A stretch of 64,000 nt of DNA from Octopus sinensis (GCF_006345805.1 NC_043026.1:10292001-10356000), one strand, 5' to 3'; positions 1 to 30,335 are shown, numbered from the stretch's first letter. Notes: generated by a model not told the origin, from the sequence alone. Made by a program: numbers and translations.

Positions 1-109
1 AAAAAAGTAAATGATTCATTTCTATAGAGATAATCTGAAGAGATAAACATTTGTCTTAACTGAGCTGGATGCTGACAGCACCATAAAGAAGTGCTAACCT
101 CTAAAAGCA

Positions 110-500
110 GATGGAACATGTGGGTCACCCAGAAAGACAGGCTATGAAGTGCTGAAGAACTTTTCAGGTGAGATGACAAAGGACCAACATTCCTGGGGCC
201 TTGTTGTACTCAAGAAGATCCACACTTCATAACAGATGTGTTAAGACTCATCCCTCTTCTAGTTAAAAGCACTTACGGCCATTCCTCATAAAAGTAGCCA
301 TGCAATGCCATGTAAAAATGCTGATACATTCAAATGTCCATGTGGTGCCACAGAAAAGCACCCTATGGCACAATATAGAGTGGTTGGCACTTGGAAAGGC
401 ATCCAGTAGAAACCATGACGATTCAGACTGAAGGCTGCTACAGCTCCCCATCCAACCATGCCAGCATGGACAATGGATAATGAAAAGACGATGATCAAAT
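110..500 (+). mobile_element. Degenerate RTE-LINE 3' end plus RTE-type tail in the inferred ZNF intron (also ~8130, ~13700, ~20045, ~26445, ~35110, ~42520, ~55210)
   Basis: Best-preserved copy (35110-35230) translates DGTCGSVTLRKTWDEGLK..EMTKERDPWR, matching the GTCGRGRPRKTWDEV motif of RTE remnants elsewhere in the window; followed by GGCATCCAG..CCAACCCATG..GATGATG tail. Confidence 0.65.
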
Positions 501-789
501 GAACATCCTAATTTATCAAAATTTACTCCACAGAATCTTGTGTGAAGCTGACATATTTGTAAACTACACTGACCCCTCCACATTGTGTAACAGTTTGAAA
601 AGAAAACCACAGAATAGGGGACACTAACATTAGTCCTTCTGTAGAAATAGAACTTGATACTGTTCTTTAGATCCAGGTCACTTCTGACAGAGCAGACATG
701 TGTTTAATGACATTCCATCCATGACAATCCTGTCTGTTTGTATCGTGTTGTATATCTATGACTACATCATCCCCTCAAACCTTTTCTAA

Positions 790-1225
790 ACCTTTTTTAT
801 ACACCCCTTCCCCTTTCGGCTAAGGGGAATGCGAATCAGCAAAAATTGACATTTCTAAATTACACCGACTCCTCCCCCATTTCCTTGATTTTAAACTTTT
901 TTCTCCTTAAAATATGCGGGAAAATACGGAGATTATGACTAGGAAAAAAAATTCCAGAAATCTTTGTAAAATGTTTTTTTAAAGAATTTTTTTCTTTTCT
1001 AAAAATGCGGAAAAATACGGAGACATCAGGATACGGACAAAAATTTCAAAGCATCTCTGTACTTACGGTTAGGGTTTTAGGGTTAGTGTTACGGAAAAAA
1101 GTCAAAATTGAAGAAGTTAGTCGGGGAATTTTCACAATGCCGATTTTTTGCAACTTTCCGGAATCTCCGTATTCGAAAACGGGGATTTTTTAGGGAAAAA
1201 AAAAATTTAATAAACAAATTTGGGA
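790..1225. repeat. Unclassified AT-rich interspersed repeat (fuller copy at ~27990-28775; also in U1-U3)
   Basis: Recurs in every unit. Has inverted AAATACGGAGATT/AATCTCCGTATT motifs similar to sub-terminal motifs of the 1234-3217 element; probably an old DNA-transposon remnant. Confidence 0.35.
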
Positions 1226-1233
1226 GAAAATAG

Positions 1234-25822: not shown

Positions 25823-27689
25823 AATTAGTTTAATTTCTTTTAAAAAAAGACATCTGTAAAGATATTACAGTCACATGATCTAATCACTTCTCTCATGTGT
25901 TCAGAAGAAATGAATCATACAATTTTTTCACTCTCTTCCAATATTTTGCCTCTCAAATCCCAGTTTATATCTTTTCTTCTTTTTCTTTTTATACTTTATT
26001 TCTTGCAAACAGTTCTTCTGCTGTATTTATGTCCAGTGTTACTTATGTTTAGCAACACTTCAATTAATTTATCCAACTTCAATCAGCACACAGGCTTCTC
26101 TTCTTCACACTCCAGTTGGTGATGTCCAGAAATTTGGCTAATAACATTTTTTCAGAACAAATGTTTCACAGGAATCCTTCTACAGTTTTGTAAAACCAAT
26201 CTGATACATCTGTTTCATAGAATATTTTCTTTTAGTCTTTAAAACAGGATAGAGTTGAGGGTTCGTCTTCCGTTACACCACTGTCATCTGATGCTCTGAA
26301 ATTAAAGACAAAGAACAGTGTCAGATGTAGAGGCTATTTAAAAAAATAAATGATTCATTTCTATAGAGATAACCTGAAGAGATAAACATTTGCCTTAACT
26401 GAGCTGGATGCTGACAGCACCACAAAGAAGTGCTAACCTCTAAAAGCAGATGGAACATGTGGGTCACCCAGAAAGACAGGCTATGAAGTGCTGAAGAACT
26501 TTTCAGGTGAGATGACAAAGGACCAACATTCCTGGTGCCTTGTTGTACTCAAGAAGATCCACACTTCATAACAGATGTGTTAAGACTCATCCCTCTTCTA
26601 GTTAAAAGCACTTGCGGCCATTCCTCATAAAAGTAGCCATGCAATGCCATGTGAAAATGCTCCATGTGGTGCCACAAAAAGCACCCTATGGCACAATTTG
26701 TAGTGGTTGGCACTTGGAAAGGCATCCAGTAGAAACCATGACAATTCAGACTGAAGGCTGCTGCAGCTCCCCATCCAACCATGCCAGCATGGACAATGGA
26801 TAATGAAAAGACGATGATCAAATGAACATCCTAATTTATCAAAATTTATTCCACAGAATCTTGTGTGAAGCTGACATATTTGTAAACTACACTGACCCCT
26901 CCACATTGTGTAACAGTTTGAAAAGAAAACCACAGAATAGGGGACACTAACATTAGTCCTTCTCCAGAAATAGAACTTGATACTGTTCTTTAGATCCAGG
27001 TCATTTCTGACCGAGCCGACATGTGTTTAATGACATTCCATCCATGACAATCCTGTCTGTTTGTATAGTGTTGTATATCTATGACTACATCATCCAATAC
27101 AGTCCTCAATATTCACGACTGGAAGGTGAAACTAAAGGGAGATGAGCAGACACATGACCAGATGGAGAGTTTTAAGACCTACAGTCTTTAATACAGATCA
27201 AACAAGAATGGTGAGTGACGAAAAGTCAACAGAATTAGAAAAGAGAAGAAAAAATACCAACTGATTTCCAACCATGTATTTTGAAGTTCAGTTGCACAGA
27301 GCAGCACCTTGAGCAAGTGTGTTCTTTAATAGCAGCAGTGTGTCTGAAGCCAGATGAGTGGATTGGATAGAAACTGAAAGAAGTTTGTTGTGTGTGACTG
27401 TGTGTTTTCTTGTCTTTATTTTCATATCAAGTTTTATTCTGATTCTGAACTTCACATCCCACTGATGCAATGCCGAGACAAGTCACCGAAGTTGTCTGTA
27501 TACAGGAACACAAATCCACCCTCAACTGTAAATCCGGATGGGGAAACACCCAGATTCCACCCAGGAGTACCCATCTATTATTTCTCTCATTTACACGTAC
27601 AAATCCATACAGACATGTTGAGATGCATGATATTGAAATATATATATGTAGTTATATATAATCAGAAGAGTGTATGTAGATTAATATGT

Positions 27690-27870
27690 ATGTACACACA
27701 TGTAGATGTATGTGTCATTTTGCATGCGTATGTGTTGTTTGAGTATATGTGTGTGTATGAGTGTGTACGTGCATGCACGTATGAACATGTGTGTAGATAT
27801 ATGTATGCACATATATATACCGTCGTCTGCAAAAATACTGACATATATGTGTAGATAGATAAGCGTGTAT
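27690..27870. repeat. TG/TA-rich low-complexity microsatellite tract
   Basis: Degenerate (TG)n/(TA)n/(TATG)n. Confidence 0.7.
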
Positions 27871-29369
27871 ATGTGTATACAAATGTTGAAGTGAATCCAA
27901 CGGTTTTTCTATGTTTTTCAATGGCTTATAAACACCTTCTTTGCAGCAATTGTTTTTATTTCAGCACACGATCGCAGATCAGGTCACTTGCTATGCAAGT
28001 ACATCTCGGTAAATTTTCCTTATATTTACGAGGGACAAAATCGGATCTTGTTAATTTTCTGAAATCCTCTCCTCACCCCATCGGAAAAGATTTTACCCAC
28101 AAATTTCTTTCTAATCGTAACCTCAGCCGTTTGAAATATATTTATATAAAATTTCACTTAAGAAATCCTTTTTCCCAAAAGTTATGAGGGAAAAACTCGG
28201 ATCTTTTGAATTTTCCAAAGTAATCCCCCACCCCTCGTTGTTTTCCGCGCATTTTTGCTTTGATATTCGTTTCCTTCCCTTTCTTTAACACCCGTTGCAC
28301 AAACCCACACACCCTTTTTTAAACCTTTTTTTTACGGGGAATGCGAATCGGTAAAAAAAATTGACAAAAATTGACATTTCTAAATTACACCGACTCCTCC
28401 CCCATTGACAAAAACTTTTTTCTCCTTAAACTTTTTTCTCCTTTAAACTTTTTTCTCCTTAAAATATGCGGGAAAATACGGAGATTATGATTATGAAAAA
28501 AAATTCCAAAAATCTTCGTAAAATGTTTTTTTAAAGAATTTTTTTTTCTAAAAATGCGGAAAAATACGGAGACATCAGGATACGGACAAAAATTTCAAAG
28601 CACCTCTGTACTTACGGTTAGGGTTTTAGGGTTCGTGTTACGGAAAAAAGTCAAAATTGAAGAAGCTAGTCGGGGAATTTTCACAATGCCGATTTTTGGC
28701 AATTTTCCGGAATCTCCGTATTCGAAAACGGGGATTATAATGGGAAAAAAAAATTTAATAAACAAATCTGGGAGAAAATAGGGGTGGGCTTTGGTGGAAG
28801 TCTTTTATTAATTTATTTTATTTCGTTTCCAGGTAATGTTGTAAACATTAACCAAATAAGGTTTTGGCTTCTAAACATTTCAGTGGTCAGGGTGTCTTTC
28901 AGTACATTTCTCAAACTAAAACACGCAACAAACGGGGCAACGATGGAGAGTGCAGACGGTAGCTTCCAAAGCTAGAAATAGCAGCTAAATCACACACGTA
29001 GCTAGAAATAACAGCCAAATCTCGCACAAACGAAGGACATCTCTTATTCATAAAACATAGAAGAGAAACAAAGAAATGACCCGCCAAAAACCGAAACGTC
29101 TACAGAATTAAAAACATTGAATATTTTCATTGTTTAATACTTACGGAAGTGTTTCATAAAGGACAGTGTTGTTATATACGTGTGTGTCTGGTAGTTGAGG
29201 AATACATTAGAACTATTATAAATGTATTATTAGCTGATTAAGAGAAATCCACGCACCTGCACATTTAACCAGATATCAACGTCAAGCAGGAAGGACGTTT
29301 AAACGCGCATGTGTCGGTAGAAAATAGCGAAGGGAGCTAAGTCTCCTTAAATCAATTGGATTTAATATC

Positions 29370-30335
29370 TTATTTATTTATTTATTATTATTTTAACCAG
29401 TTTCAGCACACGAGCCGTGGTCATGCTGGGGCACCGCCATTTGGTGTTGCTACATGATTTTACTTGACGAATGCTTTTTTGCAAATGCCATTTGGTGCAT
29501 GAGAGAGTTCGATGCGGCTGCCTCATCTACTCCTCCTGCCATGAAGTTGACTCATCAGGGACACTTGAAATTAAGAGGTCCAGTTATTCTGAAGACACTT
29601 ACATCCACCCCATGCAGATCTCTCTGGTTCCTCGGGAGGATATTGTACAGCTGTGGTCCTATGAAGCCCAGGCTATCACAGTATCTTTTCCTACATCTTG
29701 ATGGCAAATTTGGAGTCCTTGGCACCACGCAGTGGCTCCCAGTTCTGGCATTTGTGTAACTCTCAATGCCAAAGTTTGGGACAAGTCCTTCCAGGATCTT
29801 CCAGATGTATATTATGGCATATCTTTCTCGCCTACGCTCTAACGAATAGAGTCTTAATCTCTTGAGTCTTTCCCAGTAGCTTATATGCTGCACAGAGGCT
29901 ATCTTCTTCGTGTAGATTCGTTGGATCGCCTCAAGTTCCGTGATTAACTTGACACTGGATGGTGACCATAGCTGAGAGCAATAGTCAAAGTGGCTTAGGA
30001 CAAGTGTTCTCTAGAGGACCATCGTGGTTTCCTGGTCTCTTGTTCTGAAGGTTCTAAGAATGCATCCGGTCAGCCGCCTACATTTCATTGCAAATTTAGC
30101 AACATGCACATGAAAGGTTGTATCATCACTCATGTAAATACCCAGGTCACGCACTAATTGTGCCTCTGGGATTGCAATCCCTCCAGGTCCAGTGTATTCA
30201 TTGGGTATTGCACTTAGTTTTGCATGCTGATAGCATAAAGCTTGAAGCTTTTCAGCATTGAACTGCATGCTATTCTTTTCAGCCCACTTGTATATATTGC
30301 AGTTAATTATATTTCTTTTTGTCACACCCATCCCA
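29370..30335 (-). mobile_element. CR1-clade LINE, ~1 kb 5'-truncated remnant
   Basis: NIYKWAEKNSMQFNAEK..VRDLGIYMS..ILRTFRTRD.. and QHISYWERLKRLRLYSLERRRERYAIIYIWKILEGLVPNFG. Confidence 0.9.

Follow-up and report, generated by a model that had tools for sequence, protein, structure and literature searches.

Does the left part of this stretch of Octopus sinensis DNA hold a zinc-finger gene that has recently multiplied in place, and what exactly was copied? An initial annotation had proposed the recent head-to-tail amplification of a complete ZNF gene cassette. We analysed the stretch at its full length of 64,000 nt (the window) and found that the amplification is borne out, and that the completeness of the cassette is only partly supported.

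Layout of the tandem array and its neighbours

Self-BLAST and MAFFT alignment of the units showed that positions 1-29830 form a head-to-tail array of four complete units plus a partial one at the left edge, in agreement with the proposed count of at least five units, one of them running past the window edge. The units are kilobase-long direct repeats, 93-99% identical to each other (E = 0), and the similarity ends at 29830, precisely where the array had been said to stop. Each ~6-7.6 kb piece carries the coding exon of a C2H2 zinc-finger gene made up of fingers alone, and at least five copies stand head to tail (an assembly-based count).

1-4278, minus strand: partial unit T0; matches T3 at 19938-22231 after removal of the transposon at 1234-3217
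4279-9626, minus strand: unit T1, 5348 bp; covers U1 and the start of U2 of the initial annotation; without the 313-bp and 686-bp segments
9627-15883, minus strand: unit T2, 6257 bp
15884-22231, minus strand: unit T3, 6348 bp
22232-29830, minus strand: unit T4, 7599 bp; terminal and most divergent; retains the ancestral 1.2-kb segment 27099-28299

The unit lengths given earlier (5351, 6254, 6348 and ~7600 bp) were reproduced, the same register (3218/8568/14825/21172/28774) yielding 5350, 6257, 6347 and 7602 bp. The register itself had to be moved, as the meaningful unit start lies 1061 bp further right. Therefore, 28774-29830 closes the last unit; its reading as a sixth, partial unit was ruled out by a LINE ORF that marks the end of the last unit. 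Four identical novel junctions, and a right end at 29830 that is a unit boundary against unique flank, identify a tandem segmental duplication array. T0 is cut off at the left edge and has its finger exon outside the window; the visible part differs by 1.8-2.4% from T1-T3 and by 4.7% from T4. Outside the coding sequence, T4 is ~4% diverged from the other units, rising to 5.5-6% over the right-hand third of the unit.

Between 33 and 60 kb are four older paralogues that share about 80% identity with the array units, with patches of 95-100% identity to P5 and P6 amid 80% surroundings:

33446-34546, minus strand: P5, ORF of 366 aa, 12 fingers, ~80% identical to the array units
40008-41947, minus strand: P6, 23 fingers, with a 1-bp frameshift and an internal five-finger duplication
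53701-54582, minus strand: P7, ORF of 293 aa
58522-59559, plus strand: P8, ORF of 345 aa; inverted, head-to-head with P7

The non-finger sequence is closest to Octopus, which places the window in an octopod genome: the ORF at 60134-60697, a LINE reverse-transcriptase (RT) tail, shares 74-82% identity with proteins of O. sinensis and O. vulgaris, all further matches staying at or below 54%, and repeats in the window match an O. bimaculoides locus. We consider it highly probable that the locus is a young tandem gene array within an older octopus C2H2 zinc-finger cluster.

The founding junction and the probable history of the units

The unit junctions, at 4278/4279, 9626/9627, 15883/15884 and 22231/22232, are identical in sequence. 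Each fuses the 3′ tail of a 5′-truncated LINE to a 52-bp-repeat element.

22217-22260, unstranded: junction example, LINE tail ending in GCATATCTCTCGTCG, then the 52-bp-repeat element starting with ATAGCTGGAAATAG
29545-30300, minus strand: CR1/jockey-like LINE, 5′-truncated, with an ORF for the reverse-transcriptase C-terminus; the frame spans the array end

The LINE ORF is 37% identical to an RT-domain protein (E = 2e-24) in an alignment that crosses 29830, and its frame continues unbroken from the array end into the unique flank (...SLERRRERY/AIIYIWKILEG...), T0-T3 retaining only the LINE part left of the breakpoint. The LINE ORF sequence right of 29830 is unrelated to the 52-bp-repeat element found right of the internal junctions, and ~4 nt are common to both. 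Given the identical internal junctions and the LINE ORF that continues past 29830, we infer one founding non-homologous duplication of ~7.6 kb. The claim that the birth step could be read at base resolution is thus upheld, the founding junction being visible at the base level. The breakpoint is ambiguous over ~7 nt with ATCT microhomology; because the junction sides share only these ~4 nt and patchy similarity, the founding event appears to have been non-homologous or microhomology-mediated. The microhomology was taken from neighbouring 52-mers and not from the true parent, since the left array end and the left parental breakpoint are outside the window. An origin by recombination between long flanking repeats (NAHR) was rejected, as the right-side sequences have ~4 nt in common; the left parent lies off-window.

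Unit alignments confirmed the length differences listed in the initial annotation, namely one finger, a 313-bp segment (10943-11255 and equivalents), absent from T1 at 5587/5588, and a segment given as 680 bp that measures 686 bp (14022-14707 and equivalents), absent from T1 at 8447/8448, where the 5-bp direct repeat TGAAG flanks the deletion. The 1201-bp segment at 27099-28299 is, as annotated, present only in the last of the array units; the implied polarity, a gain, was reversed. Its presence in the older paralogue P5 as well marks this segment as ancestral; the amplified lineage lost it, and an insertion in U4 is thereby ruled out. T0 carries the same 1.2-kb deletion junction as T2 and T3. 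Only T0 contains a transposon:

1234-3217, unstranded: TIR DNA transposon, 1984 bp, with 97-bp terminal inverted repeats that are 98% identical

Its 8-bp target-site duplication reads GAAAATAG (1226-1233 and 3218-3225), and the site is empty in the four other units.

In the unit alignment, 26 sites pair T2 with T3, against 13 and 7 that favour the other groupings, 236 differences are private to T4, and outgroup polarity, at few sites, fits (T4,(T1,(T2,T3))). Over the central 3 kb, T2 and T3 are 0.3-0.7% apart, compared with ~2% in the outer parts. This mosaic divergence and the conflicting patterns (13 + 7 against 26) indicate that inter-unit exchange blurs both the tree and the dating.

Such exchange raises the possibility that the array is as old as its ~80%-identical neighbours and merely looks young through gene conversion and unequal exchange (concerted evolution). 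The nearly identical central tract of T2 and T3, the conflicting site patterns and the patches shared with P5 and P6 are consistent with this, and homogenised arrays predict a terminal unit that is the most divergent. However, the units are similar over their whole length, transposon debris and junction included, homogenisation has not reached the adjacent P5-P8, indels and a transposon confined to single units survive, and the most divergent pair is only ~4-6% apart; we therefore regard great age as improbable. Even less credible is an assembly artefact in which uncollapsed haplotypes or mis-joined reads turned one or two real copies into five. Assembling 6-kb tandem repeats that are 98-99% identical is difficult, and allelic variation in heterozygous octopods may reach the 0.3-0.7% seen in the centre of T2 and T3. 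But the units stand head to tail with one common junction, they are 1.5-6% apart by substitution (Ts/Tv 1.0), and they are further set apart by large unit-specific indels, their numbers of fingers and, in a single unit, a transposon complete with target-site duplication; haplotype duplication predicts two copies, not a nested series.

Under the preferred reading, a young array, the ancestral state, as the sequence shows, was a single minus-strand locus with a 5′-truncated LINE ~4 kb upstream of the finger gene. One ~7.6 kb duplication, through replication template switch or end joining, would have joined the LINE ORF tail to the 52-bp-repeat element downstream of the gene. One inner copy may then have dropped 1.2 kb of upstream sequence, while inner and terminal finger arrays diverged in content. 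Unequal crossing-over between kilobase-long identical units could have multiplied the 6.35-kb variant until four or more copies were present, leaving mosaic divergence across the units. Birth-and-death would have followed, with whole fingers gained and lost in 84-bp steps, a frameshift and two deletions in T1, a stop and a frameshift in T4, and a transposon in T0.

Finger exons and the upstream part of the unit

The exons encode Krueppel-type C2H2 poly-zinc-finger arrays, with 28-residue C-X2-C-X12-H-X3-H fingers, TGEKPY-type linkers and an 84-bp period. Finger counts in T1-T4 are 14, 13, 14 and 15, the differences being 84-bp (one-finger) steps, and the frame is open in two of the four units (T2 and T3).

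6289-7505, minus strand: T1 finger exon coding region, 14 fingers, 1-bp deletion in finger 11
11949-13112, minus strand: T2 finger exon ORF, 387 aa, 13 fingers, open; conserved ATG at 13082
18204-19451, minus strand: T3 finger exon ORF, 415 aa, 14 canonical C2H2 fingers; family-conserved ATG (MHKRIH...) at 19421
24547-25822, minus strand: T4 finger exon, decayed, 15 finger units

T3 is the sole fully canonical copy. A Pfam search of its ORF returned zf-C2H2 (E = 3e-73) and zf-H2C2_2 (E = 1e-130), in 14 stretches, and no domain beyond the finger families, hence no effector domain. The T2 array equals that of T3 minus finger 13, and its finger 1 carries a Cys to Phe change at a zinc ligand. In T1, finger 2 is duplicated, finger 12 of T3 has no counterpart, and the frameshift in finger 11 costs the last three fingers. 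T4 has an in-frame TAG in finger 7, a frameshifting 26-bp deletion in finger 8 and two kinds of ligand loss (C to F and H to R); as judged from these lesions, it is a pseudogene. Its fingers 3-9 are not orthologous to fingers of T1-T3, and its finger array diverges by 13-14% versus 2-6% in its flanks, an excess that may reflect remodelling either in T4 or in the T1-T3 lineage. The pN/pS ratio among T1-T3 was 0.33 (8.5 synonymous and 11.5 non-synonymous changes), which hints weakly at constraint, and that between T4 and T3 was 0.61. The intact copies, T3 and probably T2, would encode sequence-specific DNA-binding proteins with 13-14 fingers. A full ORF homology search for the species' own gene models was dominated by long vertebrate poly-ZNFs (196,639 matches at E ≤ 0.001 in a representative search), an N-terminal 100-aa query found Octopus proteins at 68% identity or less and no orthologue, and an exact-product look-up of five window ORFs found none on record.

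Two further features bear on whether a unit is a gene:

19452-19893, minus strand: non-coding 5′ part of the T3 finger exon, behind the splice-acceptor-like TAATTTCAG/A, with the AG at 19895-19894
26860-27200, minus strand: ~340-bp block, 97-100% identical to 35490-35830 upstream of P5, with surroundings at 71-81%

The acceptor, ~490 bp upstream of the first finger, is invariant in all eight paralogues, and so is the downstream MHKRIH ATG, which rules out as a defect the out-of-frame upstream ATG in U1 and U4. The last exon consists of ~440 nt of 5′UTR followed by a fingers-only ORF (M-HKRIH-[TGEKPY...]n). Since the acceptor is conserved and finger-frame stops lie between it and the ATG, an upstream non-coding exon must exist. 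A first exon and promoter were sought in the units and were not located. The putative promoter module of the initial annotation was not confirmed. Most of the GC-richer stretch in a unit is made up of transposon debris and repeats, namely LINE tail, the 52-bp-repeat element and further dispersed repeats. As for the complete cassette, the acceptor is conserved and the frame is open in U2 and U3, with defects in U1 (frameshift, 686-bp loss) and U4 (stop, 26-bp deletion, ligand mutations).

The 340-bp block is a candidate gene-conversion tract, or a candidate first exon or promoter. It matched no Rfam family and no tRNA, and folding of both strands gave no signal (z = +1.1 and +0.6); a C2H2-like regex match within it contains a stop and was dismissed as chance. 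A scan of the units for poly(A) hexamers gave inconsistent presence. Two comparator Octopus ZNF loci (O. bimaculoides CM046627.1 and O. sinensis CM016885.1) showed no non-finger homology to the unit apart from repeats; their gene models take 4.6 and 10.6 kb for products of 152 and 143 aa and are therefore multi-exon.

We lean slightly towards a unit that carries its own putative first exon and promoter, because it holds 2.8-4 kb upstream of the ATG and because the head-to-head genes P7 and P8 have 3.9 kb or less between them for two promoters. The wider proposal, in which each unit would be a whole gene transcribed on its own and equipped with a promoter, a first exon, an intron, the finger exon and a 3′ end, is rather doubtful. 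It is favoured by the same upstream space, by an acceptor and 5′UTR part that are present in all copies and are the least diverged region of the unit (0.7-2%), and by the P5-conserved block, which sits at a plausible first-exon position and ends just past a GTCAGT donor-like site. Nevertheless, T1 is frameshifted and lacks the entire conserved block, T4 is a pseudogene by its lesions, much of the remaining upstream sequence is LINE or dispersed repeat, and the block is missing upstream of P6, P7 and P8, so that it is no family-wide promoter. The low divergence of the acceptor and 5′UTR part in all copies, with no first exon assigned per unit, is also compatible with a quite different arrangement, in which the inner units may be alternative terminal finger exons under a shared promoter (the 340-bp block, or an element right of 29830). 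This would be the variable-exon scheme of vertebrate protocadherins in mirror image, and amplification would then multiply DNA-binding 'cassettes' under common regulation; we think it very unlikely.

Comparison with known zinc-finger clusters

A lineage-specific C2H2 expansion in coleoid cephalopods was reportedly described by Albertin et al. in 2015 (cited in PMC10547256). The statement of the initial annotation that large C2H2 clusters are known in octopods agrees with the literature, in which lineage-specific tandem C2H2 expansion in octopods and coleoids is already documented (Holzinger et al. 2025, PMC12513265; Albertin et al. 2022, PMC9068888; Jiang et al. 2022, PMC9795677). The literature credits octopods with roughly 1,800 C2H2 genes and describes the expansions chiefly by way of gene trees; Holzinger et al. 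(2025) delineated a 495-member clade of O. bimaculoides sequences only (PMC12513265). With its units about 1.5-6% diverged, the present array is far more recent than the main C2H2 burst, placed at ~41 Ma by Jiang et al. (2022) (PMC9795677). It shares with the coleoid expansions an octopus genome, Krueppel-type poly-finger genes, chromosomal clusters and tandem duplication; whereas those studies work at the scale of gene trees and chromosomes, the present analysis follows a single array down to its junction, its end and the lesions of each copy. The array is a clear but ordinary case of how known octopus zinc-finger clusters grow.

Mammalian KRAB-ZNF clusters, as on human chromosome 19, evolve by in-situ tandem segmental duplication, birth-and-death, and finger gain and loss; Tadepally (2008) and Thomas & Schneider (2011) are cited for this evolution in PMC10547256. 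The octopus array resembles them in its head-to-tail poly-finger duplicates, 84-bp finger indels, frequent pseudogenes and transposon-rich setting. In contrast, its ORF consists of fingers only, without KRAB, SCAN or other effector domain, its unit spans just 5.3-7.6 kb, and its founding junction is non-homologous and lies within a LINE. Membership in the KRAB, SCAN or FiNZ types was rejected on the finger-frame stops between acceptor and ATG and on the restriction of Pfam matches to finger families. The FiNZ-ZNF arrays of zebrafish chromosome 4 are likewise a young, tandem ZNF family in a transposon-rich region, but their genes have an N-terminal FiNZ domain, of which none was seen in the octopus array ORF; for this large family (Wells et al. 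2023, PMC10547256), a link between ZNFs and transposable elements has been proposed.

The current picture of ZNF family growth is unchanged by the array, which shows in one place a LINE-internal non-homologous junction, amplification by unequal exchange and 84-bp finger turnover. Half of the copies have decayed at a sequence divergence of only a few per cent, and the 'gene' counts given for such expansions may include many pseudogenes. The locus is useful for estimates of ZNF birth and death rates, and it could act as a copy-number-variation marker.

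Tandem units and their founding junction

Tandem Repeats Finder detected eight arrays of an 84-bp (28-codon) unit, the length of one C2H2 zinc finger, in the window:

6308-7502, minus strand: 84-bp array inside 1-29830
11968-13079, minus strand: 84-bp array inside 1-29830
18223-19418, minus strand: 84-bp array inside 1-29830
24566-25819, minus strand: 84-bp array inside 1-29830
33.4, 40.0 and 53.7 kb, minus strand: 84-bp arrays outside 1-29830
58.5 kb, plus strand: 84-bp array outside 1-29830

Self-BLAST of the window showed that the first four are enclosed by kilobase-long direct repeats of 93-99% identity, with periods of 5350, 6257, 6347 and 7602 bp at register 3218, 8568, 14825, 21172 and 28774, and that the repeat similarity ends for all units at 29830. 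The head-to-tail structure that the initial annotation had claimed for 1-29830 was borne out, far beyond chance, by self-BLAST and MAFFT. Its unit lengths were essentially reproduced by these periods, and every length-changing event it had listed was recovered in the MAFFT alignment of the units: 313 bp absent at 5587|5588, 686 bp absent at 8447|8448, a 1201-bp segment (27099-28299) in the last unit only, and single-finger 84-bp differences between units. The structure is real and was precisely described, and its general nature was correctly read; within the window, an older cluster of eight genes has the array as its young edge.

As for the annotated boundaries, the repeat and its end at 29830 were confirmed; the true junction and the array end lie inside a LINE. 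Minus-strand translation over the right end of the array gave an unbroken reverse-transcriptase (RT) C-terminal tail, ...LWSPSSVKLITELEAIQRIYTKKIASVQHISYWERLKRLRLYSLERRRERY|AIIYIWKILEGLVPNFG..., in which the bar marks 29830, and the ORF across this position matched an RT-domain (PF00078) protein (37% identity, E = 2e-24) in an alignment that spans the boundary:

About 30300 to 29545, minus strand: 5'-truncated CR1/jockey-like LINE with an RT C-terminal ORF

Inner units keep only the part of the LINE left of the breakpoint and go on to the right of it as ATAGCTGGAAATAGTAGC..., which is related to the 52-bp minisatellite at 45014-46121. One identical sequence was found at all four internal junctions (4278|4279, 9626|9627, 15883|15884 and 22231|22232); therefore, the biologically meaningful units, T0 to T4 from left to right, start and end there:

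1-4278: T0, partial unit
4279-9626: T1, 5348 bp
9627-15883: T2, 6257 bp
15884-22231: T3, 6348 bp
22232-29830: T4, 7599 bp

The right array end coincides exactly with a unit end. The stretch 28774-29830 was rejected as the start of a further unit, since it is the tail of T4 and the LINE ORF runs through 29830. At the junction, the LINE side (GCATATCT|TTCTCG) and the 52-mer end (ACATCT|CTCATCG) have only ATCT and patchy similarity in common, and the breakpoint can be placed only to within about 7 nt. So little shared sequence points to a founding duplication that was non-homologous or microhomology-mediated, not to long-repeat recombination; the left parental sequence lies outside the window.

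The finger exon and the rest of the unit

The 900 bp 5' of the first finger were aligned for all eight paralogues. An acceptor-like TAATTTCAG|A, located about 490 bp 5' of the first finger, was invariant in all eight (its AG is at 19895-19894 in T3). The ~440 nt that follow it show 80-94% conservation, the old paralogues included, and carry finger-frame stops, and an ATG, ATGCACAAACGT (MHKR), is kept in eight of eight; therefore, the finger exon opens with a non-coding leader. The predicted protein would consist of fingers only, and at least one non-coding exon must, on the aligned sequences, exist upstream. Pfam found no domains other than C2H2 families in the finger ORF. Five ORFs of the window were looked up as exact products, and no annotated entry was found for any of them. 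T2 and T3 have an additional, lineage-specific ATG further upstream ([10 protein letters not shown]). The out-of-frame upstream ATG in T1 and T4 was rejected as a defect, because the ATG conserved in all eight is the MHKR one.

The finger copies of the four units in which they are visible differ in their state:

T1: 14 fingers, finger 2 duplicated, T3 finger 12 missing
T2: 387-aa ORF, equal to T3 minus finger 13, 2 substitutions per 1175 nt
T3: 415-aa ORF, 14 canonical fingers
T4: 15 finger units, in-frame TAG in finger 7, 26-bp deletion in finger 8

One of the two substitutions in T2 relative to T3 puts Phe in place of finger 1's first zinc-ligand Cys. A 1-bp deletion in finger 11 of T1 puts the last three fingers out of frame. 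Zinc ligands have also been lost in T4 (C to F and H to R), whose fingers 3-9 are without orthologue in T1-T3; two of these match, at 93-94% identity, fingers of P6 and P7, older finger-gene paralogues to the right of the array. Half of the copies that can be seen are defective. Given the frameshift in T1 and the stop and 26-bp deletion in T4, a "complete ZNF gene cassette", as annotated, can be claimed for no more than two of these four copies, T2 and T3. Over orthologous fingers, pN/pS was 0.33 for T1 against T3 (8.5 synonymous against 11.5 non-synonymous changes), which hints weakly at constraint, and 0.61 for T4 against T3.

The GC-richer sequence taken for a "promoter module" is there, but it is largely repeat-derived and no promoter or first exon was identified in the unit. 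The LINE tail (about 1.06 kb) and the 52-bp-repeat element belong to it, its dispersed elements have further copies at 43.9, 46.1, 56.0, 57.7, 61.5 and 62.5-63.2 kb, and one piece matches an O. bimaculoides locus. A ~340-bp block of T4 (26860-27200) recurs with 97-100% identity at 35490-35830, upstream of the older paralogue P5, in surroundings of 71-81% identity. About 256 bp of it are left in T0, T2 and T3, it is gone from T1, and the regions upstream of P6-P8 lack it. On the gene strand, a donor-like GGG|GTCAGT lies about 25 nt before the end of the block, which showed no ORF, Rfam match or folding signal. Two readings fit the block: a gene-conversion tract, or a candidate constrained first exon or promoter.

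Order and age of events

T0 alone carries a transposon:

1234-3217: non-autonomous TIR DNA transposon, 1984 bp, with 97-bp terminal inverted repeats, 98% identical

Its 8-bp target-site duplication (GAAAATAG; 1226-3225 overall) suggests a hAT- or P-like element, and its interior holds 151-bp tandem repeats, inverted 360-bp repeats and a nested SINE-like piece (2908-3120). The empty site of this insertion in the four other units speaks against the array being an assembly artefact, for example uncollapsed haplotypes, from which a nested series is not expected. Head-to-tail units with one common junction, a Ts/Tv of 1.0 for the inter-unit substitutions, big private indels and unequal finger numbers also count against such an artefact, which we consider very improbable.

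Homology to P5 extends over the first 310 bp of T4's 1.2-kb segment, which is therefore ancestral; it is present as annotated, but its reading as an insertion into T4 was rejected. The corresponding 1.2-kb deletion is common to T0, T2 and T3, with an identical junction, and its site in T1 was taken out by that unit's own 686-bp deletion (8447|8448 vs 14022-14707). A 5-bp direct repeat, TGAAG, flanks the 686 bp in intact units, so this deletion was microhomology-mediated; the ends of the 313-bp deletion share just 1 nt. Private differences among T1-T4 numbered 236 in T4, 62 in T1, 24 in T2 and 22 in T3. Informative site patterns joined T2 and T3 at 26 sites (alternatives, 13 and 7), and the few sites polarisable with the old paralogues as outgroup fit (T4,(T1,(T2,T3))). 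In non-CDS sequence, T4 is about 4% diverged from the other units (5.5-6% in its right third) and T0-T3 are 1.5-2.5% diverged from one another; T2 and T3 differ by just 0.3-0.7% over the central 3 kb and by about 2% further out. A mosaic with a more diverged terminal unit is what a tandem array is expected to acquire through unequal crossing-over and conversion.

The calibration of Albertin et al. 2015 is reportedly roughly 3.7e-9 substitutions per site per year. With this rate as r, ages were calculated as JC/2r, the dating formula of PMC9795677, where the value of r is not printed. As rough figures, blurred by inter-unit exchange, the founding duplication would be ~5-8 My old, the inner amplification 2-3 My old and the latest T2/T3 exchange <1 My old. 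The roughly 80%-identical neighbours of the array date, roughly, to tens of My; the main octopod C2H2 burst is placed at about 41 Ma (PMC9795677).

Octopod C2H2 expansions are large and partly species-restricted (PMC12513265), the genes are clustered on chromosomes (PMC9068888, PMC9795677) and the mechanism of expansion is tandem duplication (PMC9795677); the array is instructive rather than surprising. Across metazoans, ZNF number correlates with transposon load (PMC10547256). Mammalian KRAB-ZNF clusters and the zebrafish chromosome-4 FiNZ arrays are the closest analogues in mechanism, but both have an effector domain and the octopus gene has none.

Older paralogues and other repeats

P6 carries an internal duplication of a five-finger (420-bp) block (40020-41519 vs 40440-41940, 85% identity):

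40008-41947: P6, 23 fingers, 1-bp frameshift giving ORFs of 435 and 265 aa

SYNCVLTAH-type fingers of the array (12645-12728 and 6648-6731) are 95-98% identical to P6 fingers 3 and 6, and the other fingers and flanks around them are about 80-88% identical to P6; this likeness could reflect short patches of ectopic conversion or strong constraint acting on certain fingers. P7 (53701-54582, minus strand) and P8 (58522-59559, plus strand) lie head-to-head with 3.9 kb between them, so the pair arose with an inversion; a common bidirectional promoter region is possible.

A run of minisatellites extends over 42581-53097:

42581-43411: 185 bp x 4.5, 97%
45014-46121: 52 bp x 21
47809-48284: GC-rich 62/125-bp repeats, relatives inverted at 51196-51547 and again at 52884-53097
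50152-50506: 97-bp minisatellite
52370-52753: 199-bp minisatellite

Several of these are joined to a ~190-bp dispersed SINE-like element, found elsewhere at 32787-32977, 37568-38139 and 38900-39083. The LINE at the array end is followed directly on its right by a near-perfect foldback within 30490-31090 (30521-31089, 77% self-complementary), which resembles a MITE or foldback element and has partial copies at 47117-47260 and 56651-56797. Another LINE fragment lies near the right end of the window:

60134-60697, minus strand: second LINE RT C-terminal ORF, 187 aa, of a family different from the LINE at 29545-30300

Its best matches are from Octopus sinensis and O. vulgaris (74-82%), all others being at or below 54%, and it adjoins an (ATCT)n microsatellite at 59817-60059.
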